From assembly GCA_002269645.1 (NCBI GenBank), contig NIVC01002066.1, positions 143,687 to 207,686 on the forward strand: a stretch of 64,000 nucleotides of DNA. Reading direction: 5' to 3'. Under the pieces are notes generated by a model. It had not been told where the DNA came from. It saw nothing but the letters and a program-made list of their open reading frames with translations, and did not search any database. Made by a program: the position numbers and the translations under genes. Source of the DNA: Macrostomum lignano. Lineage: Eukaryota. Shown in pieces: positions 5,247 to 59,673 of the stretch. Position 1 is the stretch's first letter, and each line of letters begins with the position of its first letter.

Positions 5247-5909
5247 TCAGCCACGCACGAACAGAGTCCACTCGGGCCCGCTCAGGTGGCCAGGCGGGTA
5301 CACGAACTCCAGCAGGTGGCAGGCGAGCTCCTGTCGGGAGAAAACGGCGGCCCGGCAGTCGGCTCTGGCACTGCACTTGGCCGCGCACTGAACTGCCGAC
5401 TTTGCAACAACCGGCCAGACGGAAGGGGTACCGGATGTCACGGGAGGGCTGGACTGCTTCACTCGCCAGTAGGTATTTTGGGTGTCCTGGGTACCTGGGT
5501 AGCTCAGGAAGAATATGGAGTTGCGGTAGTAACCGCCACATTTCTGCATCGGGTTTCCGGAGCATACCGCGCTGCAGTTGCCTTCGCTCACTAAGCCATG
5601 GGATCCGTATGAGTTGCCGCAGTAGCACTCTCTGCTATTCTGCATTCCAAAGTAGCGGAATTCGCCCAGAAAGCAGATGCCGCTGCACAGCTCGTGCGAC
5701 ATCTCCGTGCTCGTTCGGACACTACCAGAAGAGAAGTGGACTGCGAATCCGCCGATCTTGCTGACTTCACTGAGCCCGTTCAAGTCTCTCGGGGATGAAT
5801 TATCCTTGTAGCAGCCCAAATAGGCGAAGCGGACGAACCTACAGGTGACGCAAGTGAGCAGGAGGGCAGCGCAGAACAGAACGAGCAGAGCGGCTGCCGG
5901 GCGGAACAT
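5247..5909 (-). CDS. Secreted WSC+PAN/apple protein, copy 3, intact and intronless (220 aa)
   Basis: ATG at 5909 aligns with the paralog starts. Signal peptide MFRPAAALLVLFCAALLLTCVTC; WSC (YLGCYKD...ELCSGIC...ECYCG...C.AVC.G...KCGG); PAN-like C-terminus (CAAKCSARADCRAAVF...CHLL). Open frame throughout. Confidence 0.9.
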   Translation of the reverse strand: MFRPAAALLVLFCAALLLTCVTCRFVRFAYLGCYKDNSSPRDLNGLSEVSKIGGFAVHFSSGSVRTSTEMSHELCSGICFLGEFRYFGMQNSRECYCGNSYGSHGLVSEGNCSAVCSGNPMQKCGGYYRNSIFFLSYPGTQDTQNTYWRVKQSSPPVTSGTPSVWPVVAKSAVQCAAKCSARADCRAAVFSRQELACHLLEFVYPPGHLSGPEWTLFVRG

Positions 5910-6447
5910 TTCGCTGCTCAAGAAAGAGGCTTGGAGCAGCTGCGGTCCTTGAAACCGTGACGTTGACAGTTTCTGCTTCTTCATCTGTTCGGCGGAAGCA
6001 GATTTATAAGACTTTGATGGAATCGCTCCTTCGACCAATCGGCGATGTTTCTAAAAATCTGATTCAGCAAGCAGCTTAGGATGCCTGTCCAGGTACTCAA
6101 GTACCCTTGAAGGCATGTCAAGCTCCAACCTGATGACTGTTTGGCCCCCATTCACTCTGGAATAAGCTGCTGTCATGCATCAAAATCTATCATAGCTTGA
6201 TTGATGCGTCCCTGTGCTTGTGCTTGCCAGGGCTGACTGCGTGTCGCGAATTTTTTCATCACAAATGACTGACAAGCATATATATATCTACAAAAGGCTT
6301 TTCGTTAGCTGCATTTTTGTCAATTTTGAGGGCATCAAACTTTTCACCTTTTATCCTTGAGGAGTGGCATTACAGGATTATTAACAGGCCGCAACTTTTT
6401 CGCTATTGGCAATTGCTGCCGTGCATGCAGTAGAATTTTAGCATCCC

Positions 6448-7756
6448 ATGATAGTCGGCTTGATAAATTTTTTAAATTTTTCAATCAATTTAAAAGTGGA
6501 TTACGCGACTGCTTCGGTGGAAGAAATTGCCAAATGGGTCCGCTACTTCTACGCGACTCTGCGTAAGTCAGACGGCAGCTTCTATTCGCCGAATACAATC
6601 GTAGGAATTCGAGCCGCACTGTTCAGGTACTTTATGAAATTACGTGGCCTCAATATCATCGCTCACGAGGCTTTTCATAGCGCGAATTTGATGGTGAAGA
6701 ATGTTTGCAATGCGTATTTGAAGTCCGGTGGTCGAGTGCAGCATTACGAAGCCATTGAGTCGGACGACCTTGTCAAGCTTGCTTCTTACTTCGACAGAAG
6801 CACTCCAACACGTTTGCAAGAAGAGGTATATTTCAATGTGTTATTTTATTTCGGCAATCGCGACAGAGAATGGCTACGAGGTCTCACTGTTCGTTCATTC
6901 CGAGAGAAGACCCTATCAAACGGAGCTATGGCGATCGAGTTGCAAGGCAGCACCTCAAAGAATGTAAAAGGCTCGAGTGACATGCGACTCTGCGACGACA
7001 ATAAACAGGCCTTGATGGTGGCCAAGCCGGAGTCAAGGCACTGTCCAGTTCAGGCCTTCCAGCTTTATTTGTCGAAAATTACTGCCGTGCCGGGTTGGAA
7101 TCAGGAGGACTTCTTTCTGCGTCCGAAACCACGAGTGAATGCGGATGGCATCTGGTACACCAAAGTACCAGTTGGAATCAACACTTTGGGGCCGTTGCTC
7201 AAGAAGATCTCTTCGAATGCTAACCTGTCCAAGCTGTACACTCCGCATTGTGTGCGACCTACAGTTGTTACGGAGCTGCATGAAGCTGGCTTTTCTGTCG
7301 AAAAAATTGCGAAGGTGACAGGTCACAAGGTGAGAAATTCTTTATTCTTAGTAAGTTTATTGACACATGGACAAGGAATTTATTAAACACCACCTCTATT
7401 CACAGAATAGCGCGTCGGTAGAACGATACATCCGGAGAGGCAAGAAGAGGGACTCGATCATGGCAGGGATGAGTGATCAGCTGACAGTCGCTCTAGCTGG
7501 AACTATGCCGGCACCAAGTTCTACATTGAGCGAAGCTCCTGCAAGGGCTGTTACAACTACCGACCCATGCGCCCTGAGTGACGCTCCTACAAGGGCTGTT
7601 GCGACTACCGACCCGTGCGGATCAGCGTCAATGTCAACTGTCAAGAAGTCACTGGTTGTTGAAGAATCGACCACCACACTTGTAGCAGCCCCCACTAAGC
7701 GGATGAAGATTTTGGCAAACGGCGAAACGAATGTTGTGCAGTTTATTTTCGAGTAA
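6448..7756 (+). mobile_element. Crypton-type tyrosine recombinase gene (DUF3504-like), 2 exons; 5' end uncertain
   Basis: Exons 6448-7329 and 7406-7756 (76-bp phase-0 intron GTGAGA...CACAG). Motifs FYATLRKSDGSFY, FGNRDRE (R), SKNVKG (K), YTPHCVR (HxxR), TGHK (H) and SVERY (Y). AATAAA at 7872. Confidence 0.85.
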
Positions 7757-7998: not shown

Positions 7999-9945
7999 CT
8001 GTGGTCAAACGACAATTTGTGATACACTTGTTTTATTCGGAATTCAGAACATATTTCAAACATATTTTTAGTACAGTGCTACAAAACTGGAAACTTCCTG
8101 TCTTTTGAGGGCCGTATACTTGACTAATAATGTACATGGCTACCTTCTTACATGCGGAATTCTGTTGCACAATCCATGCATATCATGGCCCCGTTAACTT
8201 TGGCGAGAGTAAAGCTTGATTCTGAGCAGAAGGCAAAGGTATAATTGAAGTTTGGTACACTACAAGGCGTCCTACCTACGACCTAATACTTGTACTTTGC
8301 TTTTTGGACTCGTGATTGTCTCAACACCTTAACTTTGCGCCCGTTACGGTGAGTTTTGCTTAGCTGTACAGATGACCGGCCACAGATGTCTGTACTCTGG
8401 CATATCACCGACAGGTTTATGGTTCGGTTCATCTTGAAGCCACGGTGACGACAGAGGCGAGACTGACCGAATCCCGGTGCTTGTCCCAGAGACTCTTGAA
8501 TCGCAGTTGTCATAGTCAATTGACTCGATTCGTGCTAGACTTTATTATTTGAGTTTTAAGAAGCTTCATTTGTTCAGTTTTATTTTAATGATGAGCCTAC
8601 ATGTATTTGAAATTACCTTCCAGCGCATCTTCGGGATTTTCTGGTCTTGCTATTAACCTCCACATTTTCCCATGTCCCAAATACAAGAATGATGCTTATT
8701 AGGAAATGAAATCTATTTCGATGTTCCAGGCTACTTTGCAAAACAGAAAGTAAGAGTAAACGAGAGCAACATTCTTAAATATCACATTATTATGTACAGC
8801 TTTAATTTTAGTTGAGAGTTCGAGCTCCGTTTCTTAGCAATTAAACACATTTACAACTGGACAAAGTATTCGGCCACCATTTTCCTCATAAGCAGCATTA
8901 CTGGCGGGCCCTAGCTGCAGGTGGTTATTCGATTGAAAGGTACACAGGTAAGGCTAGTATCTACGGCACTGCTTCGATTTCTAGAAGTTACTGCACAGCT
9001 TCATCCGCATCTCAGTACTCCAGTTGGAACCGATGGTCGAGGCTTAGGTCGACTCTGGCCATACAACTGAATGGGTTCCCATCCACGGTGCACTAAGTAA
9101 CAGTGGTTGCTGGAATTCAGCAGCAATACGGCTTGGGTATTGGACTCTATCAACAAGATGTTCCTAAGTTTCACGTGACGTCTTACGTCCTCAGGTACAG
9201 CTGGAGTCAACCAGGATCTCTAGTATCCCAGTCAGCCAAGTGGTCGATTTTCTCTCCTTTCCAGCATATGATTGCCCCCCCCACCCCCTAGACTGAGTTC
9301 AAAGTCCCAGGAGTTCTTTCAGGTCTAATTCTGCTCTATACTATCGATCTCATCTCAATTTTGCTCTTTTATCATGCTCCATTAGAAGTTAGATTCTACA
9401 TAAAACATTGGCTCGTGGCTTCTACATACATACCACGTGGCTTCGTAAACTCCAGTCATATAGGCGTTCTGTATGAGCACAACATAACTCATGTATAAAA
9501 ATTAGTGGAATTTGATACCAGCAGGCTGAAATGCTTAAAATTAGTTTGATACCTTTGGCTTACCAATTTATTCAGATTTGCTGGTCCTTTTACCAAGGCG
9601 CTGTCGAACAAGCGACGGAGCTTTGGTGATGTCAGCAGTTTGCCTACGTCGGCAGGGGCTACCATTCGCTCCATGAAGGTGTTTCTTTGGTAGGCACAAA
9701 TGGGTACTATTAGTAGCTCAGTCAACATATATTGACTGCAGACTCTTTCCGTACTTTCTGTTACTGTCAGCTATTTTTAGCCACTTGAATCACACCGAAG
9801 ACCTACCTAAGCTATTGTTTGTCTCTATAAAATCTGGAAAGTCTTGTAAAAAATGGGGCTCAGGCCGTCACAGTTGCATTCTGTCCTACCAATTCACTGC
9901 TACCTGCTGTGTATATCTGCTTTCAGTGAGCTTTGTGGCTACTAA

Positions 9946-12900
9946 ATGGGCAGTTGGTTCTCCAAACCAGCTCCGATCCCAACCTTCCAACCAACCTTCC
10001 TCGACAGGGAGGTAAGTTACTACGAGTAATAATCTTTCAAAGACCGAATAAAGTTCGAATCTCATTGTCAGAACTTTATTTGCGACCCTTTTTATTGTAA
10101 TACTTATGACACGTGACATGATTTTGTGATAATGCGAGATAGCAATGCTAAAATTTCAGCTATGAAGACTCACTGTCCAATTCTCTTATGAGCGTACTGA
10201 AATGCCATTCTTCCAGCTCTTCTTCTTCAGCCGGTTCAGGGAATCTACATATGCTGTAGAGACACTCTCCCAGCTGGTCATTGAAGCTGACTTCAGCCAG
10301 TTACTGCTCAAAGCAACTACGGAGCTCATGACCAAGACTGATGCAGCCGAACGAACCGTCCTCATGCTGGTCGCCGACGCTCATGAGACTCCTGTGCAGA
10401 CTGAAAAGTGCATCTGGTTCTTATTTAAGCTGGGCGCAGATCCCAAAGCGACTGACCGGTCGGGCAACACGGCCGCACACTTGGCAGCCCGGCGAGACAA
10501 CCTGCGAGTGCTTGCGCTGATTCCATTTGAAGCTAAGTGGCTGCGGAATGAGGATGGCGCCACTCCGCTGATGGAAGCCGCACGGGCTGGCAGCTGGAAA
10601 TGCACGAAGCACCTGCTGCATCTGCTGAGGCAGCTCAGGTTTAACGAGTGCTCAACGCACGGAAACTCGAAGAGGTCGCGGCTACTCGGACTGAAGGACC
10701 ACCGCGGTCGGACAGCATCGGACCTGGCCAGACTCAACGACCATTCAGAACTGGCCAACTACATTGAGCTGTACGTGAGCATTTGTAGTTAGAGTATTTG
10801 CTTTCTGCAAATTAAACATTCTCATCAGTCAATTTTTTATTTCGTACAATATTTATTTCGGGGAACTCTGTGTGTACATCTACGGCTCGTATTAGTTAAG
10901 TTGTTAAAAATATGTTCTTCTTCTAATTAACGTAATTGTATAGTAAGCCAATTTTTAATATTCGCTGTCACAGAGAAATGCGGCTGGTTTTCGATTGCAA
11001 TGGCTCCATCACAGGTCTGGATTTTGTGGTGAGTGAGTCATCTGTGTGCCCATGTGTTTACGGTGTACAATGATGCCAAAAAATGTATTTGTCTTTCAGG
11101 AAAGCTGGCTAAAGGATATGAAAAAGCTGATTGAGGATGAAAACTACTCAGCGTTGGTTCAGAAGGTGAACCGATTTAACTGTGACTTGCCTAACAGCCA
11201 GGGCAACACATTTTCGATTATGTTTATATATGTCAGTCAGCCTCGGCAGCGCAGCAATCCAGATACTACGAATCTGAATCAAGAAACATTTTTGAAGAAG
11301 CTTCTGCAGGTGAGTGATCCCACGTGTGCAAATACATACGGGATGAGTGCCTTGCATATTGCGGCCTACAAGGGCAATTCTGCGGCAGCCACCGCACTGC
11401 TGAACGCTGGAGCCAGGGCTAATGTCATGTGCTTGGAATGGACTCCCCTTATGCTAGCAGCTTGTTGCACCCAGCAAGATGCCGCAGCATCAGTTTGCTG
11501 GATTCTGCTTTGCGCAGGTTCCAATTGGAGCCTGAAGAACCGAGAAGGAAAAACTGCACTAGATTTAGCAAATGAGCAAGGAAGCCACAAGATGGCTGAG
11601 CTTCTGCGTAGGTGAGTTTCATGTTGTACCAATTTATTTTTTAACTATCGATAAATTATCAGATATATAATTTCTTTTAATTAGCTATTTGAAATTTTTA
11701 CTGTTTTCTTGAATTTTTTAGATTTCATGATATGGACTGGTGGACTGAATTACCGTACCAGACAAGAAGAGGTCAAGTCGGTACTACAGACAGTTTATCT
11801 ACCGAGAGGTTTGTCCCGTAATGTTTATTTTCTATACCTTTTGCAGAAAACGTAAAAATGTACTGCAATATCCCTCGATAATGACAATCTAAAATATTTT
11901 ATGTGACTTTTAAATTACTTCTGAAGAATAGCGATTAGACGATTAACAGACCGAAAAAAGTATATCAGAATTTATTCCATGTCATTTTTTGCAATTTCAA
12001 AACACCAAGTCAATAAGTGAAAATGAAACTTCCCGGTCATAATTCAACATTAGGCCGTCCATTAATGGTATTTCAGGGTAATTAGTCTCTTGTCCCTAAA
12101 TTTCAGCTTTCGTGAAAACGATGCCTGGACTACCAGACCACAGTATCAGACTGGGAGTGGTGAATCTGGTGCCAGCTACAGCTACGAATATAGAAGACCG
12201 CCTGCCACCTACATAAGCCAAGCTTCTCGTTGCACCCCACAGTCGCTTCAAGCAGTTGATCAACATTCTGCTGTCGAGAGTGATTGCAGCTCAAATTCGA
12301 GGTTTGTGCCTGAATATCTACAATTTCGAAAGCTTTTACTAAAAACACCGGGTTTGATATTCAAAATTTTTTACCGAAGTTATTAAAATACCAAAGAATG
12401 ATGCGATCATGGGCGGCGAGAGCTTGCGGCACCGGGGGCACGTGCCCCCCCCCCGAAAATGAGTCCACATGGTAATTTTTAGTGCTTTTTCTGACTTTAG
12501 GTCCTAATTAGCAGCTTATAAAGGTATCTGTGCCCCCTTGCTCTGTGCCCAGTGCCCCCCTCAAATATTAGGCTCCGCCGCCCCTGGATGCGATTTATAT
12601 TTTAAAATATTCAACAAGCCTGCACAAATTGTCGCACTGCTTTTTACAGGTTTGCTAAACTATCTACCTAAGCCCTTAATTTCAACTGTATTGCAGTCGC
12701 AGCGACGAATTTTATCCGGTGACAAATCCTCAAGGACTGTGCGTTATCATTAACATCAGCAAGTTCGAATCCAGCAGCGAGGGGGAGCGTAAAGGCTCGC
12801 AGTTTGACGTGGAACGAGTCAGTGAGCTCTTCAGCAAACTGGGATTCATCATTGACGTACGCGAGGATCTGACTGCTGATGAGATCGAAAACTACTTAGA

Positions 12901-13533
12901 TTGTGTAAGAATTTGGAAAGAACTGGAACGCCATGGCGCTTTTGTCTGCTTCCTTATGACTCACGGTCGCGAGGACTGCATCGTCGGTAGCGATGGGAAG
13001 CCCTGCAAGATTTTCGATCTCACGAGAAAGTTTCAGGTGATTTATTTGCACTTGATCCGAACACTCAAAAGAACTCATTGCAACGCTGTACCATTTGCAA
13101 AAACCTGTTTCAGCCGAAATAATGCAGCAGTCTGGCTGGCAAGCCAAAAATTTTCTTCGTCCAGGCCTGCCGTGGCCTCGAAAAAGACGAATTGTTGGTG
13201 AAAAGAGAAACAATCGACAATGCAGGTGGTCGATTCGAGGGAACTTCGGTTCTCTATCCTTCTAACAGTGACTTTCTGATTTTTTACGCCACCCCCCGCG
13301 GTCAGGTTGCGTTTAGAGATGAAAACACCGGCTCATACTTCATTCAAACAGTGTGCGAACTAATTGAAAAGTACTACCAGACAGAAGACTTGATGAGCAT
13401 CATGGTTCGAGTTAACAAGCGCATGGCGAAGGAGCCTTACAGGGATGGCGACCAGTATTTTCATGTGGTGGGTGAAATTACTGGGCACCCAACTCGCAAG
13501 ATCTCCCTCGATCCAAGCAGAGCATGCGATTAA
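9946..13533 (+). CDS. Ankyrin-repeat-caspase (peptidase C14) fusion with predicted N-myristoylation; in-frame TAA in the last exon
   Basis: Phase-consistent exons 9946-10011, 10217-10770, 10974-11028, 11100-11611, 11722-11808, 12107-12301, 12697-13036 and 13114-13533 (742 aa if read through). Starts MGSWFSK. Ankyrin motifs GNTAAHLAA, GATPLMEAA, GMSALHIAA and WTPLMLAA. Caspase motifs GLCVIIN, FLMTHG (His 12962), KPKIFFVQACRG (Cys 13168) and SDFLIFYAT...GSYFIQ. TAA at 13120-13122. Confidence 0.85.
12408..12586. mobile_element. hAT-like MITE (179 bp) in a caspase-gene intron
   Basis: TIRs CATGGGCGGCG / CGCCGCCCCTG; 8-bp TSD GATGCGAT at 12400-12407 and 12587-12594. Confidence 0.85.
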
Positions 13534-14679
13534 TAAAGACGAACCTGCTCACCATAAACACGTAAACTATAACAATTGAGTGATGTCTCTGAGTTTCAGC
13601 TGATTATTGTTCTTTTTCCAGCTTTACCCAAAGAGTTTCTAAGGCATGCTAGCGTCTAACATCGTGTTTTACGGTAACTATGACTATACGTATAACTAAC
13701 TATCCATATACCTCTACGAGAATCGTAGCTGAAAAGCGGTGCCTATTTACTCCTAAAAAATTAACCCTTTTATTTAGCTACTGCAGCCAGTGACAGACTT
13801 ACGAGTATATATTATTAGTGGGCTTTTTACTATAGACCTTTCCCGCTGCTGCTAGAGAGGATGCGAGGGCAAATGATGCGGGGGTTTGAGCTTTGATGAG
13901 TTTCATCAAACACGTACCGGTCTAACTGTAGAGCAATACGATCTAGAGAGAGTCTAGAGGCTTTTGACAAGAGTGACAAAATCAAGAAATCAAGGACGTA
14001 TCTTCTTCAAATTTAGCACATATTACGGTTAGAAAATATCTATCTCTCAGTTTGCTATTTTTGAGGGCAAACAAAGCCACATATACATATATTATCGCGG
14101 GCCGCACGCATAGATGCTCATTGACTTGAAAGCCTACTAAGCCTACTACTTAAAGCTATTTGGATCTCCAGCTAGCCCTCCTTTTTATTTGTTTACCCCT
14201 ATTTTTGCTCTCGAAACCTCCCATTTCTGCATGCCTTTCAAAGTACCTACAATTTCAATTACTTGGAGCCTCGAGTTCCTGTCGTTCGGCTTATCTTTAT
14301 GACGTACTGTACGGATTGCTCAAGTTTTTTTCTGCGATTGTTTATTCAAATTGAAAATTATTTGTTTTTCTATTCTCCTACTAATTACGTACGCACGTAC
14401 AAATTATATAGATTTGCTTCCACTCCAATGTCACGTATAGCAACTAATTGTTTCTAAGAAAGGCTTGTTTTTAAGACAGGCTACACTCTAGTTGAACTAC
14501 GTATCTGGTAATGGCTATATTTAGTAGCAAGAAAAATAATACTGTCTGCCGCAAACAGAGTAAAATTTATTATCTACAATTCTCTAGTGCGAGTGAACTT
14601 CTCTTTTTAGAATTAGCATAACAGAAGTAGCAAGCCGCGGCTTTAAATGTTCTTAAAGGAGAAAGAATTATTCATAGAT

Positions 14680-16286: not shown

Positions 16287-16777
16287 ACGTTGCATACAGA
16301 CTGGTGGATCTGTGTCCAAGGCTTCTGCATTCCTACAGAAAGAGCACTACAACAAATTGCATGTTCAAATATGAGTACAATTTCTTGCCAAAATAACCCA
16401 ATTAAACATACAACATTATAGTACGATCTATAAAACCTGAGAATAAATTTGAGAATACATCGTACTTGCCTCTTTCAATTCTTTTTTCTTTATAGCTGTA
16501 TGCACAGCAAGTACACTTTTTCCAGCTTTTCTCTGCTGTACTCGCAAATACTTCGAATGGCCCAACTCCTCTTTCTCACTCCGCCTCTCTGGCACCGTTC
16601 TCTCTGCTCTTCTTTTCTATTTCTACTGTTGAATAGTGCGCACTCCCTATTCCCCTGTGCATCTCCGACTGCTAACGCAACTATCCTATTGTTTGTTCTC
16701 TCTTCTCTGTACCCGTATTTGCAATATAACACATTAACAACGACTGTTGATATTAATTAATTACTATGTTAATATTA

Positions 16778-17293
16778 GGTAGCTACTCTCATCAGCCTTT
16801 AAACTTCTCAACTCCTGACAGGTAGCTACTCTCATCAGCCTTCAAACTTCTGAGCTCCTGACAGGTAGCTATTCTCATCAGCCTTCAAACTTCTGAGCTC
16901 CTGACAGGTAGCTATTCTCATCAGCGTTCAAACTTCTGAGCTCCTGACAGGTAGCTATTCTCATCAGCGTTCAAACTTCTGAGCTCCTGACAGGTAGCTA
17001 TTCTCATCAGCCTTCAAACTTCTGAGCTCCTGACAGGTAGCTATTCTCATCAGCCTTCAAACTTCTGAGCTCCTGACAGGTAGCTATTCTCATCAGCGTT
17101 CAAACTTCTGAGCTCCTGACAGGTAGCTATTCTCATCAGCGTTCAAACTTCTGAGCTCCTGACAGGTAGCTATTCTCATCAGCGTTCAAACTTCTGAGCT
17201 CCTGACAGGTAGCTATTCTCATCAGCGTTCAAACTTCTGAGCTCCTGACAGGTAGCTACTCTCATCAGCCTTCAAACTTCTCAACTCCTGACA
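16778..17293. repeat. 43-bp minisatellite, 12 copies
   Basis: Unit GGTAGCTATTCTCATCAGC(C/G)TTCAAACTTCTGAGCTCCTGACA. Units start at 16778, 16821, 16864 and so on, with no spacers. Confidence 0.95.
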
Positions 17294-18023
17294 GTAGGCA
17301 TTTAACCTGAAATTTTGCGAAGCTTTTTTTTAGTCCAGCGATTCCCCAAGATCGATAAAACGCAGAGACACTGCAGAAATCCAGACAAGTTATTATGAAG
17401 AGTCAAGCACAGACACTGCAGTAAAACACAGAGCATTATACAATATATTGCTTTTTAGAACCAACTGAATAGTTGACAAACCATTATGAAAACAAATGGA
17501 GGCAAAGTTTGTCTAAAGGTACGACTATTGAAAGTCAGTCTAAGAAGACCTTGTCGACTTTTTTTAAATCTGCAGCTGTCGCCAAGTTCGTAGCTGCTTC
17601 TGACATAACAGACGATCGATCCTATAGTTCAAGAAAAATGAGTATTTACTATGGTAGAATCTTTTGAATGAGTGCTCCATCTATTCTGATGGAGCAGAGA
17701 GATTTTAGAAAGTTGCAACAAACCGAAAAAACCGAGCAACAAAAAATGCAAACGCGGGAGAGGAGCTTCCTACTTTTTTATTGTACGTAGCAAATGGTCT
17801 ATTCTTGGCATGCGCTGCTTCGTTTTAATGCTCTCTAACTAGGTTGACACAAAGCTATCATTTAACTCGATGAGCATGAAAACAGTAAGTTCAATTTTTC
17901 GGGCCATCCTGCAAGTTTTTACGGATATAAGATGCGGATTTCACAAGCTTATAAAGTCTGCTTTGTTTGTCATGAGAGCAGACTAGAAACACGTCTCGTT
18001 CGATTCTCACTGCTTAGTAGACG

Positions 18024-19323
18024 ATGCAAACCTTTACGTTGGTCTACGGCATCATCGCTTTGCTTCTAGCCACCTCACAGCAGGTGGACTGCGTGTTCTG
18101 TCCGCCAGGATGGCTGTTGACAGCCTCGCGCGGACTGTGCATCGGGACTTCGTCGTTCCAAGCCACTGAAGGCATTCCGGCAGCTGCGGCCGCTGATTTC
18201 TGCGGCAGAGCCGTCAGGCAGGCTGGTCTGGCGAGCACAGCAGCCGACCCGGATGTGCTTCGGTTGGGGCAGAAGCTGGCGAAGGGACGGCGACTGTGGG
18301 TTTCCGGCTGTTCGAAGGCTTCAATCAAACGGAATGTGTAAGTCTGCTGTCTGTCTGGTGGTGTTGTAGATAATAGTCTCGAGCTGCCCGGGCTCGATTC
18401 CAAGTGCAGTCATTAATTTGGGGCTAAATTGGAATCTCGACTTGAGTCTGCTCGTGCATGAAATTAATGGCCTTTCTTTAGCGCCAACCATCAAGGCACA
18501 GTGAAGTATATACATGTCTAACGATAATATATTCAGGGTCCCTGTACACCTCTGTGAAAGTGTGCCTGTTTTTATGACTGATAGTTTTGTGTGCTTGCTC
18601 AGGGGAGTCGTTGGAATGAGCAGTAATGAATCTCGCCAGTTGTGTGACAATGTCTGTTAAAGGGTGCACACAGCCCCTGTCTCTAGCTAAAAAATCTGCT
18701 GTCTATGGCTGGGTCTCGCAGTTGAGGCTCATAAGCTTTGGTCGAAAATGGGCCGGGAGCAAATGGGCCGACCCACAAGGGTTAATTTCTGCATACTTTT
18801 GCCTGAGTGTAGTGCCTGCATGTGATTTTGACGAACCTTAATTGCCTTTTGGCAGTGCCGAAAGGAATCAGAGACTCGATTAAAAATAACACTGAACAAC
18901 AGACGAATAGATAAACCGTATAACTTTTCTGAATGTTGCAGCGAAAGTCGCCAGTGCTGCGCAGTCAATCCTGATGATGGAAGCATCATGCGGACAGCTT
19001 GTTCAGAGCTGCTCCTTCCTTTGTGCTCGGCGTCACCCTTGCTGAGTCGGCAGAAGCGCTTCTACTACGATTTCAGCTACACCAACGACTACTCAATATA
19101 CTCTACAACAGTGCTTCCATTCACAAGCAGTCCTGATGCAGCAACGATTGTCATTGTGATTTTTGTCACTATATTACCGATAGTCCTTTTTGCGCTGCTT
19201 GTCTGGTGCTGCATGCGCTGCTGCTGCAAGAGTAAGACGGTTGTAAAGCCAGCGCCACCGCCAGAGCCTGAACCTGAAGTTGAGGTGATCGGCATTGTGA
19301 CTGTTCACACTGTGCGATATTAA
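18024..19323 (+). CDS. C-type-lectin-like / furin site / single-pass TM protein, copy A (231 aa)
   Basis: Exons 18024-18337 and 18942-19323 (phase 2, GTAAGT...TTGCAG). Signal peptide; CPPGW...C...FC...LAS...LWVSG...C...C...LC; SRQKR; TM IVIVIFVTILPIVLFALLVW; CCMRCCC. Confidence 0.8.
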
Positions 19324-20223
19324 CGACTGCTGGCTGCTGTACATGTACGAGTCGTACGTACTTCTATTTTTCGGTATACACTAGTATTCAGTGGATGTCT
19401 TTGCAACAAATAATCTTTAGCGACACTGCAATTGCGAGCTTAAAGGACTTAATTAATCACATTGCGCGTTTTTTTCTATGTAAGATACGTTCAAGAATAT
19501 TAGATTCATGTAAACATCTTTAATCAGCGTTACTTTCATACTCTAACAAGTTTTATTCAAATTTACTTTGTTACAGCTTTTTGAAGGAACAAATGCTTTT
19601 TTAACAAAAATTCCAACAATATACAGCTCGTACAAGGTAAACGTGTTGTTTAGTATTTTAGTTCGATATTAGTTACTCATGTTCACGAGTAGAGCAACAG
19701 ACATGCATTTTGCAAGCATGCAGGCGATTAAATTTAAAATATACTCGTATTATTATTAATTTTAACGAATGCACTTCTACTCTGTTTTCCAAAGAAATAT
19801 TTGTAAGCATGCACATTATAGCTCGCACTAAAAAGACATAAAGGTTGCAAATGCGGGAGAAAAGTGTTTTAATTTTTTAGCTCGTATTGTACGTAGCAAG
19901 TGGTCTATTCATGGCATGCGCTGCTTCATTTGAATGCTCTCTAAGCTGACTCAAAGCTCCCATTTCATTCAATGAGCACGACAACCGTCGATTCAATTTT
20001 TGGCCATCCTGCAAGTATCACGGATATATGATGCGGATTTCATTCGCTTATAAAGTTTGCTTTGTCTGTGAGCACGAAGAAAATCAATTCAATTTTCGGG
20101 GATCCTGCAAGTTTTCACGGATTTAAGATGCGGATTTCACAAGCTTATAAAGTCTACTTTGTTTTCATGAAAGCCAACAAAAAACACGTCTCGCTCGAGT
20201 CTCACTGCTAAAGCTAGTAGACG

Positions 20224-20934
20224 ATGCAAACCTTTACGCTACTCTTTAGCATCAGCGCTCTGCTTCTAGCCACCTCACAGCAGGTGGACTGCGTGTTCTG
20301 TCCGTCTGGATGGCTGTTGATAGCCTCGCGCGGACTGTGCATCGGGACTCCGTCGTTCCAAGCCACTGAAGGCATTCCGGCAGCTGCGGCCGCTGATTCC
20401 TGAGGCAGAGCCGTCAGGCAGGCTGGTCTGGCGAGCTCAGCAGCCGACCCGGATGTGCTTCAGTTGGGGCAGAAGCTAGCGAAGGGACGGCGACTGTGGG
20501 TTTCCGGCTGTTCGAATGCTTTGATCGAATGGAATGAGTAAGGCTGCTCTGCAGTATAATGCTGTTATTGAGAGTTCAGCATTTAGCACGACTGCAGACT
20601 CTCACGACTATCAGGGGTTTGATTCCCGTGTGAGCGCTAGCTGGCTCATGTTGCATGCAGAGAAAGTCGTCAGTGCTGTGCAGTCAATCCCGCTGATGGA
20701 AACATCGTGCCAACAGCTTGTTCAGAGATGCTTCTTCCTTTGTGCTTCGCCCCTCCCTTGCTAAGTCGGCAGAAGCGCCAACAGTCAGGCAGTTCTTTTG
20801 TAGGAACGGTTATCGGTGGGATTTTCGGAGTTATTGCAACGATAATTGTTTTTGCACTTCTGATCTGGTGCTGCTGCAAAGTCTGCACAAGTAATATCGT
20901 TATTCCAGAGCCTCAGCCTGACATTGAGGACTAA
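20224..20934 (+). pseudogene. Lectin-TM copy B, nonsense at codon 60
   Basis: Exons 20224-20537 and 20661-20934. TGA at 20401-20403 replaces the conserved Cys (TGC) of ADFCGR. The intron is shortened to 123 bp. Confidence 0.85.
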
Positions 20935-25971: not shown

Positions 25972-26469
25972 AGAATCCGCCCCCGGAATCCGCCCCCGGA
26001 ATCCGCCCCCGGAATCCGCCCCCGGAATCCGCCCCCGGAATCCGCCCCCGGAATCCGCCCCGGAATCCGCCCCCGGAATCCGCCCCCGGAATCCGCCCCC
26101 GGAATCCGCCCCCGGAATCCGCCCCCGGAATCCGCCCCCGGAATCCGCCCCGGAATCCGCCCCCGGAATCCGCCCCCGGAATCCGCCCCCGGAATCCGCC
26201 CCCGGAATCCGCCCCCGGAATCCGCCCCCGGAATCCGCCCCGGAATCCGCCCCCGGAATCCGCCCCCGGAATCCGCCCCCGGAATCCGCCCCGGAATCCG
26301 CCCCCGGAATCCGCCCCCGGAATCCGCCCCGGAATCCGCCCCCGGAATCCGCCCCCGGAATCCGCCCCCGGAATCCGCCCCCGGAATCCGCCCCCGGAAT
26401 CCGCCCCGGAATCCGCCCCCGGAATCCGCCCCCGGAATCCGCCCCCGGAATCCGCCCCCGGAATCCGCC
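25972..26469. repeat. 13-bp minisatellite (GGAATCCGCCCCC)n with 12-bp variants
   Basis: Read directly, about 39 units. Confidence 0.95.
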
Positions 26470-27297
26470 ATCACAATCTGCTCCCAGAACCGTCAGCTTA
26501 CAAAATAATATCGTCTGTTAATGAAAAATTATTATCCGTGATTCAGAGTGAAAAAAATATTATTTTAAACTTCATTCACTTACACGAGAATGCAACTGCA
26601 GAGTTAAGTTTTTCATAATTCCCAGTTTTAACCAGTTTCCAAGTGGTTTTATTCTTTTAATTCTATCCACCTAAACACCAGGGGTCGGCAAACTCCGTCA
26701 CAGAGCCTCTCTATCCGGCCTTTGGGTCTTCTAGAAACTTTTCAATGGCAATCGGGCCCTCTTTTTTCTTCGAGTACCCCATGCAGATTCTTTTTCTTGA
26801 CGCTTGGCGAAAGCTTCCAGTCCAGAGCAGTGAAGGGGTTGCAGGTTTTGTCAGACGAACGAACTGTGAGCTATGGGTTTAATAACTCATGGGTGGCTTT
26901 GCAGTGTCTGCGAGCCTTGTCTAATATTCCTTCGGTGTATCCTAACCCTTGCAATCTAATGGCGGAATCTTTTGAATGCGTGCTCCATCTATTCGTGGAA
27001 ATAAATGAAGCTTGCACTAAAGTCATAAAATTTGCATATTCGTTGCGATGTGGTTCTATCGTAAGCAAACGAGCAGGCGCTGCTTCGGTTGAATGCTCAC
27101 TGGACTATTCAAAGCTCTCATTTAATTCAATGCGCACGAAAACAGTCAATTCAATTGTCCTGCCAGCCAAGTTTTCGCGGATATATAGTATATAATAAGA
27201 TGCGAAAATCTCACAAGCTGATAAGGTTTGCTTTGTGAGCCATAAAAACCAGACAAATTTCCACGTCTCATTCGAGTCTCACTGCTAAAGCTAGACG

Positions 27298-28244
27298 ATG
27301 CAAACTTTTACGTTGGTCTTCGCCATCAGCGCTTTGCTTCTAGCCGCCTCACATCAGGTGGACTGCGTGTTCTGTCCGCCAGGATGGCTGTTGACAGCCT
27401 CGCGCGGACTGTGCATCGGGACTCCGTCATTCCAAGCCGCTGCAGGCATCCGGGCAGCTGCGGCCGCTGATTTCTGCGGCAGAGCCGTCAGGCAGGCTGG
27501 TCTGGCGAGCACAGCAGCCGACCCGGATGTGCTTCGGTTGGGGCAGAAACTGGCGAAGGGACGGCGACTGTGGGTTTCCGGCTGTTCGAAGGCTTCGATC
27601 GAACGGAATGAGTAAGGCTGCTGTCTAGTGCTGTTTTTCGTTGATTCAGTATTTAGCACGGGCCAGCCACCCCAGGCACAGCGGGTCAGGGTCCCGCTGA
27701 CGAAAGCTCCCCTAGAAACTGGATTAAGATTGCTATATAGTTTATCCATCGGTTTCTACAGGAAGCTTCGACAATAAACTCTCAAGACAGTGAACCTTAT
27801 TTACATGTACCTTTATTGATCAAATATACGAATCTAAACCGTACAACTTCTCCACAATGTCGCAACTGTTGCAGTGAAAGTCGTCAGTGCTGTGCAGTCA
27901 ATCCCGTTGATAGAAAAATCACGCCAACAGCTTGTTCGGAGCTGCTCCCTCCTCTGTGCTCCGCGCCTCCCTTGCTGAGTCGGCAGAAGCGGCAATACTC
28001 TTACTACTACTACTACTTATACTCCACAACAGTGCCTTCATCATACTACTCAAGCAGTTCTTATGTAGGAACGGTTCTAGGTGTGATTTTTGGAGTTATA
28101 GTACCGATAGTGATTGTTGTGCTTGTGATCTGGTGCTGCTGCAATTGCTGCAAAAGCAAGACGGTTGTCGTAAATCCAGTGCCTCAGCCCCAGCCTATGG
28201 GTATGGGGGTGAACATTGTGAATGTTCAGAATATGCAGCATTGA
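27298..28244 (+). CDS. Lectin-TM copy C (227 aa)
   Basis: Exons 27298-27611 and 27875-28244. RQKR-QYSYYYYYLYSTTVPSSYYSSSSY, TM, WCCCNCCK, tail ending NMQH. Confidence 0.85.
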
Positions 28245-32654: not shown

Positions 32655-34322
32655 CTAGTGACAGGCGGCACAGAGCGGACACAGACACGGTGGAGCGGAG
32701 CGGAGCGCGGCTGCGACCTGCGAATGAAGAGCGGTGCGAGACACGGCAGAAATGGTGTGGGAAGCAAATTCGAAAGGACAAATGCATAAAGAGCCGTAAA
32801 GACGGCAGCAAAAATTAATGAGCTCTCTGCTCGAGCCCCCCATTCTAGAAGCGGAGTCGCTCAGCAGCTGCATCTGGCCAGGAAGGTGGAACGCCTAGAG
32901 CTGAATTCCCGACGTGAGGCACACGAGAGCAACGGTCTGATAGATGCGAATGAGCAGAGGATGCCGACAGGACAGCTTATTGACCATGCCGACGGCAGCA
33001 GTGCTGTCCGAGTAAATCACCACGCGGCTGTTCCTAAGCTGCTCGCGGAAGCGCAGGATGGTAAGCAGCGGAGCCAGCGCCTCCTTGAGGTTGATGTGAA
33101 GGTCGCAGAACTTGCTCTCAAAGTCCTTCTCCCAGCTGAAGTACGTCCAGTCATTGAATTCGCTGCCAAAGACGATGCCAGCAGCACCCTCGCAACTGCT
33201 ATCAGATTCGATGGCCACAAGTTGACGAAAACGGGGGCGAATGACCGTCGGCGGCAGAGAACTCACGACGCGCAGCCACCAGAGGAAGAGGTTGCGAAGC
33301 TCAGATGGCAGCCGGGTGTCCATTCTGCAGCTGAGGATGTCGAAGAGCGGGCGCAGGAAAGGACGCAAAAGCCTGTTGATCTGGCTGAGCCAGCACAACT
33401 TTCCGGCCAGTTTTTCGAGCTGCTTCAGTTTAACAACGTCACGTGACAGGCAATCGTTCAGCAGTTTCCGAATGTCGTCTTTCTTGTTGCTTGGAAGTGA
33501 CAGGGTGCCGTTCACAGTGTCAACCAGCACGTCGAGAAACACAACGTGTTGAGCTGGAGCCACGGTCTTCTGCCTGTTGATGTCGAAGCCTAAGTTCTGC
33601 AGCAGATCAACCAGATAATTGAAGGCCTCCTGAGCCGCTTCTTCAGTATCAGCGGCTACTGCCCAGTCGTCCAAGTAGTTGACGGTAGCTGTGAAGCCAA
33701 TGCTGAACATGTGGCGCTTGATGCAGGCCGATAAGCGATGGAAAATCTCACATGACGCTCGAGCACCAAAGGGCAACCGAGTGTCAACGAGCACCGAGTC
33801 ATCGCTGTCGGCAGAGAACCGCCAGCTGAGGCCCGTGAGCACCTGGTCGTCAGGGTGAATACCGACGGAACGATAGGCCTGCTTGAGGTCCATTTTGCCG
33901 ATAAACGAGTTTGGGCGAAGATAGCGGGTCAGGTCTTGGACAGAGGCGAAGCGCAGCCCCTTTTCCTGCTCATAGCTGTCGTTGACGGAGGACCCCGAAG
34001 GTCTAGAAAGGTCATGAATGACCCGGACACTGCCGTCAGATTTTGGAATCGCCCCGATGGCGTTCACCATGACAGGGCCATTGGCGAGCTGCAAGCGGCC
34101 GAGACGGAGCTCCTCGGCGAGCTGTTCACCAACCTGCTTGGCTTGGTCCAAGGCCGATCGGTAGTTGGCGGAGCGGGCAAGAAAAGGCGGCGATCTATTG
34201 ATGAGCCGAAAGCCGTAGCTAAGGCCGCTGCGAAGAAAATCTTCGTCTTGGTCACCCAGAAGCAGCGGCTCCCAGACGACAGAGCGCGGCGCGGTGGAGA
34301 GAGCAGGGTGCGAGCAGGGCAA
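32655..34322 (-). pseudogene. Ngaro RT-RNase H ORF with a nonsense codon near the end
   Basis: KMDLKQAY, LPFG, YLDD; RNase H SDSS, NLKEA and YSDS. TAG at 32897-32895 lies before the in-frame AFHLPGQMQLLSDSASR. Confidence 0.9.
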
Positions 34323-34392
34323 TGAGCAGATGGAGGCAAGATAAAAGGTGACGGCGAACGGGGGTTAAAAGCAGGGCGGCTATAAAAAAGAT

Positions 34393-35451
34393 CTAGTTTT
34401 TTGCTTCCTCCACAGCGTCGCCGCCGACGCTGGCCGGACGGTGCTGGTGTGCGGGGTGCAGCCGGCCGCAGTCGCGCAGCTTGCAGACGTGACGGTATCT
34501 ACAGGAGGACCGCTGGCAGCCGGCAGGGGAGTTGTAGCTTAGGCAGATGGGAGCTTGCGACTGGTTGGATGCTGGTCTGCTTAGGGTGACTTTTAAGTTT
34601 CTTGGTGCGTTAAGGTGTCGGTGGTACAGCTGTGGAGGCTCGCAGCCCCATCGATGCGAATCCGAGTCGGCGATCAACTTTCTGTAATCCTCATCGAATT
34701 CCCACACGACACTTGGGCTGTAGTTAGCGTCTAAGAGCTCGCCGATCTTCTGTGAGTACTCCAGATAGCCTTTTAGTTCGTCAACATTGACAGATCTATC
34801 CTCATTAATGTGAATCAGCGACCCATCATCAACTAGTCGAAGCAAAATCTTAGAGTTCCCTGCAATCCACTGGCCGACAGAGATTTTCCCCAAGCTGGGT
34901 GGCTGCTTCTTAAAGACCAGGTTCCCGTTCTCCATGCAGGCTGTGAGGCTCTCATTAGGTTGATTTGAACTGGGCTTGACAAAATCGCGAATCAGATAAG
35001 CCCTGCTAGGCTTTTTGTCACACTGGCTTCTGCCGGGATCTGTAAGAGCGCCGCCTAACAAAAACGCCTCATGCAAGCCAGCATTTTCTCCCCGCTCACC
35101 TTGTTGTGGAGGTTCCTGAGACCGGTGGTTCTGCGACTGATTGAGCTCGCTTTGCAGTTGTGCGCGGCGCCGAGTCAGAGCTTCAATCTCCAGCTGCTCG
35201 ACCTCCTTCCTCAGAGCCGCCAGGTCGCTCGCCGCGCTCCCTGAAGCTCCGTGTCCACCCGTCGAATGTCCAGCGTCGATGGTGTCTGAGTTGAGGCTTG
35301 CGTCGTGACTTTTTGCTGCAGCTGGATACTCAGACATAGCACGCAGGTGTCTGTGTAGACGCTCATAGAGTTGTTGTTTACGACCAGCTTGTGAGAGGCC
35401 TCGCTGAGCTAGCTCTTGTTTGAGCTGTTTAGTTGTGCGTGCACTTTCCAT
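34393..35451 (-). CDS. Ngaro gag-like ORF1 with N-terminal SAP motif and C-terminal Cys/His finger (352 aa)
   Basis: ATG at 35451 just inside repeat A1. TTKQLKQELAQRGLSQAGRKQQLYERL fits the SAP consensus; CLSYNSPAGCQRSSCRYRHVCKLRDCGRLHPAHQH at the C-terminus. Confidence 0.8.
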   Translation of the reverse strand: MESARTTKQLKQELAQRGLSQAGRKQQLYERLHRHLRAMSEYPAAAKSHDASLNSDTIDAGHSTGGHGASGSAASDLAALRKEVEQLEIEALTRRRAQLQSELNQSQNHRSQEPPQQGERGENAGLHEAFLLGGALTDPGRSQCDKKPSRAYLIRDFVKPSSNQPNESLTACMENGNLVFKKQPPSLGKISVGQWIAGNSKILLRLVDDGSLIHINEDRSVNVDELKGYLEYSQKIGELLDANYSPSVVWEFDEDYRKLIADSDSHRWGCEPPQLYHRHLNAPRNLKVTLSRPASNQSQAPICLSYNSPAGCQRSSCRYRHVCKLRDCGRLHPAHQHRPASVGGDAVEEAKN

Positions 35452-36103
35452 AATGGTAAAATTTTGAGCTGCAAAGCCAAAGCGAGCGACGGGGCACAGA
35501 GGGCGGCGTGCAAATAAATAAGCGGGTGAGCAAACCCCCCACCCCACGGGGGGTAGAGAGGACGGAGCACAAAGGCGGCACAATGCACAGCGCGAGGGGT
35601 GGATGGCTAACACCCATTTCACTCCAGGCTCACAAAAGAGCCTAAGAGAAATGGAGGCATTCATAGTTAAACAACAGACCAGATTACAGAATATTACCAG
35701 ATGTGGACCAGATTGTGGACCAGATTGACATAAACCAAAGCAATTTAAAAGAATAATCGTAAAAATAAAATCACATATCATACCAGTAAAAAGGTTTTAA
35801 TTAATCAGCCTCTATCTCAAAAAGCCGACTGCCTTCTTATTAACTGGGTAACTGCAAGAGATTACACAAAACCAGACATAAAACTCAAGAGGTCTCAAAT
35901 TCAAGAATGTAACAATCTCGGTTTTTACCTAAAAACCTAGTTTAAACAATAATAAGAAACATTTTGAAGGGTTTGTAAAAAATATTCATTAGAAGTGTAA
36001 ATTACCTTTAATATTGTTTTAAAGTTTATTCATCTTTATTTAATTGTTATCATTACTTAGTAGGTTAGCTACTTTTTGAATCATTTTTCATGACACTTTA
36101 TGT

Positions 36104-37039: not shown

Positions 37040-37652
37040 GCGGATCCAGTTTTGTGAGGCGCATCCAGTTTTGTGAGGTGGATCCAGTTTTGTGAGGTGG
37101 ATCCAGTTTGGGGGGAGGATCCAGTTTGGGGGGAGGATACAGTTTGGGGGGAGGATCCAGTTTGGGGGAGGATCCAGTTTGGGGGGAGGATACAGTTTGG
37201 GGGGAGGATCCAGTTTGGGGGGAGGATCCAGTTTGGGGGGAGGATCCAGTTTGGGGGGAGGATACAGTTTGGGGGGAGGATCCAGTTTGGGGGGAGGATC
37301 CAGTTTGGGGGGAGGATCCAGTTTGGGGGGAGGATCCAGTTTGGGGGAGGATCCAGTTTGGGGGGAGGATCCAGTTTGGGGGGAGGATCCAGATCCAGTT
37401 TAAGGGGCGGATTCAGATCCAGTTTGGGGGTAGGATTCAAATCCAATTTGGGGGGAGGATGCAGTTGGGAGGTCGGCGGATTCTGTTGGGGGGAGGATTC
37501 AGTTTGGGGGCGGATCCAGTTGGGGGGGGATACAGTTGGGGGGCGGATCCAATTTGGAGGGGGGATCCAGTTGGGGGGGGGGGGCAGATCCAATTTGGGT
37601 TGGCGGATCCAGTTTGGAGGGGGGATACAGTTTGGGGGCGGATCCAGTTTGA
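37040..37652. repeat. 19-20-bp G-rich minisatellite (GGGGGGAGGATCCAGTTT)n
   Basis: Read directly; same GGATCCAGTTT family as 661-1302, degenerating towards 37650. Confidence 0.95.
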
Positions 37653-46315: not shown

Positions 46316-46607
46316 TAAAAAGGTCGCACTAAAAGCCATAAAAAATTGCATATTCTATCGTAAGCAAACGATCCTATTCATGAACAGGCGCTGCTTCGGT
46401 TGAATGCTCTCTATAACTAAGTTGACTATTCAAAGCTCTCATTTAATTCAATGCGCACGAAAACAGTGAATTCAATTGTCTGCCAGCCAAGTTTGCGCGG
46501 ATACATAGATGCAATATCTCTCAAGCTTATAAATTAGGATTGCTTCGTGTGCCATGAAAGACACAAATTTCCACGTCTCGTTTGAGTCTCACTGCTAAAG
46601 CTAGACG

Positions 46608-47670
46608 ATGAAAACTTTTACGCTAGTCTTCGGCATCAGCGCTTTGCTTCTAGCCGCCTCACAGCAGGTGGACTGCGTATTCTGTCCGCCAGGATGGCTG
46701 TTGACAACCTCGCGCGGACTGTGCATCGGGACTCCGTCATTCCAAGCCGCTGCAGGCATCCGGGCAGCTACGGCCGCTGATTTCTGCGGCAGAGCCGTCA
46801 GGCAGGCTGGTCTGGCGAGCTCAGCAGCCGACCCGGATGTGCTTCGGTTGGGGCAGAAACTGGCGAAGGGACGGCGACTGTGGGTTTCCGGCTGTTCGAA
46901 GGCTTCGATCGAACGGAATGAGTAAGGCTGCTGTCTAGTGCTGTTTTCGGGGGTTCAGTATTTAGCACGACTGTGCAGTCTCTCACGGCTCATCAGGGGT
47001 TCGATTCCCTTGTAAGCGCTAGCTGGCCTCATAAGTGAAGGTCTCCTGCAAGAAAATGCGATCCCGGGGCTTGTCATACAATCAACGACCATAAGGGCCA
47101 ACCAACCCAGGCACAGAGCGGGTCAGGGTTGCTGCGCACAGTGCCGAAAGTCCCCCTAGACACTTGATTACTATAATATTTTGTCCATCGGTTTCTGTGG
47201 AAAGCTTCTGAGGGTCACCTTTATTGATCAATTAAACGAATCCAAACCGTATAACCTCTCCGAAATGTTGCAATTGTTGCAGTGAAAGTCGTCAGTGCTG
47301 CGCAATCAATCCCGTTGATGGAAAAATCACGCCAACAGCTTGTTCGGAGCTGCTCCCTCCTCTGTGCTCCGCGCCTCCCTTGCTAAGCCGGCAGAAGCGC
47401 CAATACTCTTACTACTACTACTACTTATACTCCGCCACAACGCGTTCACCTTACTACGACTCGTACTATTACTCAAGCGGCGCTTATGTAGGATTGGTTA
47501 TCGGTGTGATTTTGGCAATTTTAGTACCAATAGTGATTGTTGTGCTTGTGATCTGGTGCTGCTGCAAGTGCTGCAAAAGCAAGACGGTTGTCGTAAATCC
47601 AGTTCGTCAGCCTCAGCCTATGGGTATGGGAGTGAACATTGTGAATGTTCAGAATATGCAGCACCACTGA
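46608..47670 (+). CDS. Lectin-TM copy D (233 aa)
   Basis: Exons 46608-46921 and 47283-47670. RQKR-QYSYYYYYLYSATTRSPYYDSYYYSSGAY, TM, WCCCKCCK, tail ending NMQHH. Confidence 0.85.
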
Positions 47671-59347: not shown

Positions 59348-59673
59348 TGGTAGTTCTCAGATGGGAATTGTGCAACTCTGATCTTGGTAGTTCTCAGATG
59401 GGAATTGTGCAACTCTGATCTTGGTAGTTCTCAGATGGGAATTGTGCAACTCTGATCTTGGTAGTTCTCAGATGGGAATTGTGCAACTCTGATCTTGGTA
59501 GTTCTCAGATGGGAATTGTGCAACTCTGATCTTGGTAGTTCTCAGATGGGAATTGTGCAACTCTGATCTTGGTAGTTCTCAGATGGGAATTGTGCAACTC
59601 TGATCTTGGTAGTTCTCAGATGGGAATTGTGCAACTCTGATCTTGGTAGTTCTCAGATAATTGTGCAACTCTG
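59348..59673. repeat. 37-bp minisatellite, 8 full copies plus a partial
   Basis: Unit TGGTAGTTCTCAGATGGGAATTGTGCAACTCTGATCT; identical units, no spacers. Confidence 0.95.

Follow-up and report, generated by a model that had tools for sequence, protein, structure and literature searches.

The window analyzed here is a 64,000-nucleotide stretch of the genome of Macrostomum lignano, a free-living basal flatworm, and covers positions 143687-207686 of contig NIVC01002066.1 (assembly GCA_002269645.1, Mlig_3_7), reaching the contig end; its first 23,122 bases are 100% identical to that contig. At 9946-13533 on the + strand lies the annotated gene BOX15_Mlig006631g1, running from the A of its ATG (9946) to the final base of its natural stop codon (13533). 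The literature we found makes no mention of Mlig006631. A sequence-only reading of the same DNA had proposed a membrane-anchored caspase with an ankyrin-repeat prodomain. We found the corresponding domains in that order, together with an in-frame stop codon between the two catalytic motifs of the caspase, and consider that the window copy is probably a homeologue or allele that was disabled very recently, with the function maintained by intact sister copies.

Gene structure and encoded domains

We built an exon model from three-frame translation and splice-join tests and compared it with the GenBank protein of BOX15_Mlig006631g1 (P0001, 605 aa). The model has eight exons on the + strand, with every intron bounded by GT-AG; codons 1-605 translate identically to P0001, and conceptual read-through of the premature stop gives a 742-aa product. 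The gene set of this assembly is a transcript-based, genome-guided transcriptome annotation, and the GenBank coding sequence spans all eight exons; paralogue loci agree, sharing both architecture and intron positions with BOX15_Mlig006631g1, so the ankyrin and caspase exons do belong to one gene, as had been supposed.

Exon 1 (9946..10011, matching P0001) encodes MGSWFSKPAPIPTFQPTFLDRE with its N-myristoylation consensus (G2, S3, S6, K7). The MGSWFSK first coding exon is thus present as described, and its start is well defined for any transcript containing exon 1, because an in-frame TAA at 9943-9945 directly precedes the ATG. A candidate spliced-leader or 5′ untranslated region acceptor, TTTCAG at 9921..9926 (+), lies 19 nt upstream of the ATG and fits the M. 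lignano trans-splice acceptor motif [T/C]TNCAG. Trans-splicing there would be compatible with the annotated start: the spliced leader ends in ATG, and splicing at 9926 would presumably give ATG/TGA (slashes mark junctions and cleavage points throughout), an immediately closed mini open reading frame (ORF).

The prodomain occupies exons 2 to 6. Exon 2 (10217..10770) encodes the first ankyrin-repeat cluster (Pfam Ank_4/Ank_2) and a family-specific SWKCxKHLLHLLRQ helix, in a region that is conserved in >30 M. lignano proteins. Exon 3 is a 55-nt micro-exon (10974..11028) encoding (L)EMRLVFDCNGSITGLDFV; it is required for an exact match to P0001 and has a counterpart at the locus of paralogue P0005, and comparison with P0001 ruled out a 7-exon model that joins IELY/ESW without it. 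Exon 4 (11100..11611) carries the second ankyrin-repeat cluster (Pfam Ank_2/Ank/Ank_5), with matches at residues 268-365 of a 725-aa model lacking exon 3, equivalent to ~286-383 in the 742-aa numbering; ankyrin and DARPin matches in the PDB cover residues 286-408. Both clusters of the sequence-only reading are therefore recovered as Pfam Ank families. The linker exons are both symmetric, exon 5 (11722..11808, 87 nt) with phase 2-2 and the Ser/Thr-rich exon 6 (12107..12301, 195 nt) with a VESD/C sequence at 12273-12284. The linker is 96 aa long and Ser/Thr-rich as claimed, with 28% Ser+Thr vs 15% across the whole protein. Exon 5 is missing from sister model P0002 and exons 5 and 6 from P0003, which suggests that they act as cassettes; their omission would alter linker length and drop the VESD site, itself, by inference only, a possible site of prodomain removal.

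The caspase domain is divided between the last two exons. Exon 7 (12697..13036) encodes the N-terminal part of p20 (beta1-alpha3, by Pfam PF00656 and alignment to caspase-3), including an S1-pocket Arg within GERKG (12782-12796) and the MTHG motif (12956-12967) with the catalytic His codon CAC at 12962-12964. Exon 8 (13114..13533) encodes PK and a stop, followed by an open frame with beta4, QACRG (13162-13176; catalytic Cys codon TGC at 13168-13170), the intersubunit sequence ETID/N (13207-13218) where caspase-3 has IETD/S, and p10 with AFRDE, which provides an S1-pocket Arg, up to the natural stop TAA at 13531-13533. An AATAAA polyadenylation signal, read from the sequence at 13532..13537 (+), overlaps this natural stop, indicating that the 3′ end of the gene was built for the full-length ORF.

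Searches of the conceptual protein against Pfam gave Peptidase_C14 (PF00656; E 1.7e-44, 152.7 bits vs a cut-off of 21.4) and several Ank families, among them Ank_2 (E 5.8e-24), both far beyond chance. No CARD or DED matched the prodomain (Pfam, E<0.01), as the sequence-only reading had expected. An AlphaFold2 (AF2) model from a 26-sequence family alignment places residues 1-22 in a disordered tail, 25-406 in a confident helical repeat domain (predicted local distance difference test, pLDDT, ~90, the exon 2 region included), 407-497 in a disordered linker (pLDDT ~24, exon 5 included) and 498-605 in a beta-alpha-beta partial caspase fold. In the model the prodomain takes the form of ankyrin repeats, and in Foldseek the N-terminal domain resembles proteins with tandem ankyrin-repeat domains, namely DARPin-DARPin fusions and tankyrase ARC2-3. 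Among solved structures, the caspase domain is closest to caspase-3/-7 (~35-38% identity; PDB caspase-3, E 8.7e-35), and the equivalents of caspase-3 R64, H121, Q161, C163 and R207 all align in the conceptual read-through. The Asp-specific S1 pocket (Arg64/Gln161/Arg207) is thus complete in that product, with the Gln and the second Arg lying past the premature stop. The caspase domain of the ancestral protein would be Asp-specific and of the caspase-3/7/8 type.

The premature stop in exon 8

The in-frame TAA at 13120-13122 (codon 606) is codon 3 of the last exon and precedes the catalytic Cys codon by 16 codons, between the His motif MTHG and the Cys motif QACRG. The donor CAG/gtgatt (13036) and the acceptor tttcag/ (13114) are both strong and join in phase 0, and the joined frame reads ...DLTRKFQ-PK-TAA-CSSLAGKPKIFFVQACRG. 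Paralogue P0005 has an intron at the identical position of its own locus (ERFQ/TSVC), indicating that the junction is canonical for the family and that the TAA falls in the frame of conserved coding sequence. The GenBank coding sequence also ends at this TAA (gene end 13177 in the coordinates of locus L001, window position 13122). The full caspase of the sequence-only reading is therefore borne out in the order of its motifs (MTHG, QACRG, p10), but not in its continuity, as the frame closes before the catalytic Cys. Catalytic His and Cys (QACxG) share one uninterrupted ORF in the near-identical proteins P0002, P0003 and P0004, and are separated by the stop in the window copy.

In the caspase fold, the catalytic Cys comes immediately after strand beta4, and strands beta5 and beta6 belong to p10. 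The predicted product of the window copy has helix alpha3 of p20 as its last element and lacks beta4, the catalytic Cys and the whole of p10, so the stub cannot form the active site; by its sequence as assembled, the copy cannot yield an active protease. We rejected a variant nuclear code and stop-codon readthrough, as the gene's own terminal stop is also TAA and no nuclear stop codon is known to be reassigned in M. lignano.

In the three near-identical proteins, derived from the earlier ML2 assembly, the sequence is RKFQPKLCSSLAGKPK: Leu takes the place of the stop, and the chain continues intact to the same C-terminus. The causal change is presumably a single base, TTA Leu to TAA. The 136 codons past the TAA are open and differ from P0003 only by E710K, and upstream of the TAA there are 6 differences from P0003 in 455 aligned residues; conservation is equal on the two sides of the stop, which points to either a very recent lesion or a base error. 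M. lignano DV1 is a recent hidden polyploid with 180 Mb of duplicated non-repetitive blocks at least 95% identical, according to the genome publication. Together with the untouched downstream ORF, this makes a recently disabled homeologue or allele the most likely explanation, with function retained by the intact sisters.

Several points weigh against this explanation. The TAA rests on one assembly, produced with Canu from PacBio reads and polished by Pilon with Illumina and RNA-seq reads, and REAPR scored only 64% of its bases error-free; in a highly duplicated genome, polishing with multi-mapping reads makes a base error possible. The TTA codon of the sisters is deduced from the Leu in their protein sequences, and myristoylation, membrane location, partners, cleavage sites and enzyme activity are all predicted. 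In addition, the P0211 cluster, P0005 and P0247 are paralogues without an MG start.

An assembly or polishing error would leave the gene intact, encoding a full 742-aa myristoylated ankyrin-caspase. We regard this as the less likely account, though one to be taken seriously: Leu occupies the stop position in each of the three near-identical ML2 proteins, the frame stays intact and conserved over the 136 codons that follow, the polyadenylation signal sits at the full-length stop, and the assembly is redundant and of imperfect base accuracy. On the other hand, long-read consensus errors are generally indels rather than transversions, and the annotation pipeline retained the truncated coding sequence. 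The copy also has private substitutions at S271, R274, S297, L344, N383 and E710, which mark it as distinct and able to carry a private nonsense change.

mRNA decay dependent on the exon junction complex should not be set off by a premature stop that lies in the last exon, so the transcript is no obvious target of nonsense-mediated decay, and a 605-aa product combining the lipid-anchor signal, the ankyrin module and a non-catalytic caspase stub could be made. Such a product might even be functional, as a decoy or dominant-negative regulator of the intact sisters comparable to cFLIP-short or truncated human caspase-12. Its mRNA should escape decay, its recruitment module is complete by Pfam and AF2, and the family already tolerates non-catalytic members, namely the Cys-less P0005 (QAGRG) and the module-only P0008, P0011 and P0014. 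We nevertheless find a functional truncation improbable, since there is no sign of age or selection (conservation after the stop equals that before it, as fits a very recent lesion), and a p20 fragment without beta4 is likely unstable.

The only in-frame splice route that we found around the TAA uses a donor AA/gtttca at 13029 and an acceptor AG at 13127 or 13130, a NAGNAG-like pair. Alternative splicing of this kind would skip the stop through GT-AG junctions at both acceptors and yield an in-frame caspase lacking ~8 residues (..DLTRN(S)LAGKPK..). The donor, however, falls far short of the M. lignano consensus GT[G/A]AG, the removed stretch includes the conserved F....C segment leading into beta4, and the paralogues use the canonical junction; we rejected this route as the main form and give it hardly any weight. 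A recently disabled copy with intact sisters remains the explanation that we favor.

Paralogues, myristoylation signal and neighboring genes

A full-length search returned strong matches solely among M. lignano proteins. These comprise the near-identical copies, the diverged ankyrin-caspase paralogues P0005 (43%), P0006 (37%) and P0007, and >15 proteins that carry the same ~400-aa module (~50% identical) ahead of a protein kinase domain closest to the STE-group kinases ASK1/MAP3K5, MAP3K2, PAK and TNIK. The double-ankyrin module also occurs alone (P0008, P0011, P0014) and in an SH3 fusion. An exhaustive caspase-domain profile search, followed by module detection, Pfam and source look-up, added proteins of ~1060 aa with module, kinase and caspase (BOX15_Mlig018903g1-3, at three loci, the P0247/P0359/P0360 cluster), two kinase-domain caspases with only weak matches to the ankyrin module (P0248, P0250), and a separate M. 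lignano caspase with many canonical ankyrin repeats (Mlig001045). Across the other M. lignano loci (P0247/P0359/P0360, P0220, P0328), we observed caspases with ankyrin-module plus kinase, Ras/Roc, or canonical ankyrin-repeat prodomains. By its sequence, BOX15_Mlig006631g1 is a member of a Macrostomum-specific expansion of double-ankyrin-prodomain caspases.

In a quick neighbor-joining tree, the module-bearing M. lignano caspases group together at 28% support, and effector and initiator affinities are not separated. Outside Macrostomum, caspase-3/7-like and invertebrate caspase-8-like proteins match the caspase domain best, at similar scores, and a jellyfish (Sanderia) protein also pairs Ank with a caspase. 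The QAGRG that replaces QACRG in P0005 is genome-encoded, indicating that non-catalytic family members exist; the Cys-bearing paralogues keep an Asp in the intersubunit linker (ETID, LAVD, VTFD), and P0005 is without it.

The MGSWFSK start satisfies G-{EDRKHPFYW}-x(2)-[STAGCN]-{P}, the PROSITE PS00008 pattern, and sits on the tail modelled as disordered. An MGS...S sequence is also found at the first Met of P0006 (MGSGSS) and P0007 (MGSAAS), whose N-termini are otherwise dissimilar, and the paralogue groups that share it are only 37-48% identical; other family members and the listed kinase fusions start differently. Recurrence in two diverged paralogue groups makes N-myristoylation of the intact proteins plausible, and supports, without proving, that MGS...S is a genuine lipidation signal for part of the family. 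The membrane-anchored caspase of the sequence-only reading is thus plausible for intact family members, while the window copy is inactive as assembled.

The region 2.5 kb upstream of the caspase gene holds a Crypton-like element with a 314-aa ORF (6442-7383, +), in which DUF3504 and a tyrosine recombinase domain of phage-integrase-like type are recognized. Sister model P0004 has a near-identical peptide fused to its N-terminus, which links the element to at least two copies of the gene.

The gene had also been placed between two lectin-type arrays and tied to them in a surface-recognition pathway; the flanks are roughly as described, and the pathway link was one of adjacency. Secreted-protein genes with a WSC domain and a signal peptide, one also with PAN, lie on the - strand at ~1-370, 1815-2582, 5250-6050 and 42.3-43.2 kb, with a further WSC gene fragment at 36.2-36.4 kb (-). 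Four copies of a small two-exon gene lie on the + strand at 18021-19320, 20221-20931, 27295-28241 and 46605-47667. They encode a signal peptide, the Cys pattern CPPGW...WVSGC...CCAVNP..ACSE..LC, which recalls a short C-type-lectin-like domain (CTLD), a transmembrane helix and a Cys-rich tail, and no Pfam family reaches threshold for any of the four. A WSC-CTLD unit at 42.3-47.7 kb has ~3 kb between its two genes and lacks a caspase, and the two paralogue loci that were scanned (L002, L003) have no WSC or CTLD neighbors; annotated genes beside paralogue loci include a Sema-domain gene and an arginine-kinase-like gene. As conserved linkage is lacking in these three places, we rejected functional coupling of the caspase to the lectin genes.

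Elsewhere in the window, retroelement remains occupy 31.0-36.0 kb (-), GC-rich at ~0.55, with a reverse-transcriptase ORF at 32898-34364 adjoined by a 467-aa ORF with a SAP domain at 34396-35796 (-). An open frame at 57965-58372 (+), recognized by eye, resembles ribosomal protein S7e. Many minisatellites with periods of 13-45 bp are present (665-1302, 16777-17294, 25973-26469, 37042-37651, 56942-57930, 59348-59673 and 60100-61211); a GGATCCAGTTTGGG core is common to the arrays of 20 bp (665-1302) and 18 bp (37042-37651), and a strong negative GC skew at 52-58 kb coincides with C-rich arrays.

Proposed mechanism and known systems

The intact protein would start with MGS...SK on a disordered tail, continue through two ankyrin-repeat domains connected by helices and a disordered Ser/Thr-rich linker of ~95 aa, and end in the caspase. 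We propose that myristoylation positions the intact proenzyme at the membrane and that the two helix-joined ankyrin domains form a protein-recruitment module, docking the proenzyme to a partner. Ankyrin-kinase relatives carry the same module and may therefore bind that partner too. The conserved intersubunit Asp (ETID/N) would then be cut, through induced proximity or by an upstream caspase, and cleavage of the linker at VESD/C could free the active enzyme from its anchor. More broadly, and only tentatively, we suggest that Macrostomum may possess a modular toolkit for death or stress signaling, in which the ~400-aa double-ankyrin module takes the role of a CARD, DED or death domain and is interchangeably fused to caspases, STE/MAP3K-like kinases, kinase plus caspase, or SH3, with some of the caspases tethered by myristoyl and released through the linker.

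Taken alone, BOX15_Mlig006631g1 has little significance, as it is already annotated, is uncharacterised, and appears to be a disabled copy, although its nonsense change offers a small example of early gene decay after recent genome duplication. The family matters more: a module common to caspases and MAP3K-like kinases hints at a lineage-specific signaling platform, and if the toolkit exists, ankyrin-prodomain caspases would predate flatworm parasitism or have arisen independently of it. M. lignano is tractable to transgenesis, which makes the function of both the myristoyl anchor and the ankyrin module directly testable.

The architecture itself is not novel, having already been published for flatworms. 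Ankyrin-prodomain caspases were reported in Schistosoma (Lee et al. 2014; PMC11463336), and a lophotrochozoan survey (Genome Biol Evol 2024) treated "ANK caspases" as a platyhelminth-specific clade, sister to DED caspases (PMC11463336). The same survey confines them to parasitic flatworms, proposes an initiator-like role through ankyrin-mediated recruitment, and notes that flatworms lack FADD and, planarians excepted, DED caspases (PMC11463336). It also describes an M. lignano caspase whose prodomain is kinase-like and which it positions as sister to the ANK clade, and reports no other unusual flatworm prodomain (PMC11463336). This protein could correspond to the P0247 cluster, the kinase-containing caspases with the same ankyrin module as BOX15_Mlig006631g1, or to the P0248/P0250 type. 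The M. lignano family thus corrects two published claims, that ankyrin-prodomain caspases are found only in parasites and that M. lignano has a single odd caspase; what appears new, on sequence grounds, is the extension of a known architecture to a free-living macrostomid. As for neodermatan ANK caspases, a word search with the caspase domain recovered none, giving only Macrostomum proteins, caspase-3/7 and fish CARD caspases; no parasite sequence occurred among the identified members of the top 150 in the exhaustive caspase profile search, and querying with the caspase domain of P0328, a generic-Ank caspase, gave no matches.

Like the effector caspases-3/-7 (MEROPS C14A), the intact protein has the His-Cys dyad, QACRG, the S1 Arg/Gln/Arg and an intersubunit-linker Asp, but its prodomain is 490 aa long vs ~28 aa in caspase-3. 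MGSWFSKP fits the N-myristoyltransferase preferences (G2, S3, S6, K7) of Src-type N-myristoylated proteins (MGSxxSKP...), again on a disordered tail; unlike those proteins, it lacks a second membrane signal, whether a polybasic stretch next to it or a Cys that could be palmitoylated, and the modification is predicted. In retaining a recruitment domain while losing catalysis by a point change alongside active sisters, the window copy resembles the premature-stop allele of human CASP12 and cFLIP, an analogy only; the type of prodomain differs. In common with the platyhelminth ANK caspases, N-terminal ankyrin repeats replace CARD or DED ahead of p20/p10 in a flatworm protein. The M. lignano proteins differ from them in forming several ankyrin-caspase groups in a free-living species, outside the stated restriction to parasites, in having as prodomain a family-specific double-ankyrin module common to kinases, and in carrying, in some members, a predicted myristoylation signal, with the window copy truncated by a nonsense codon.

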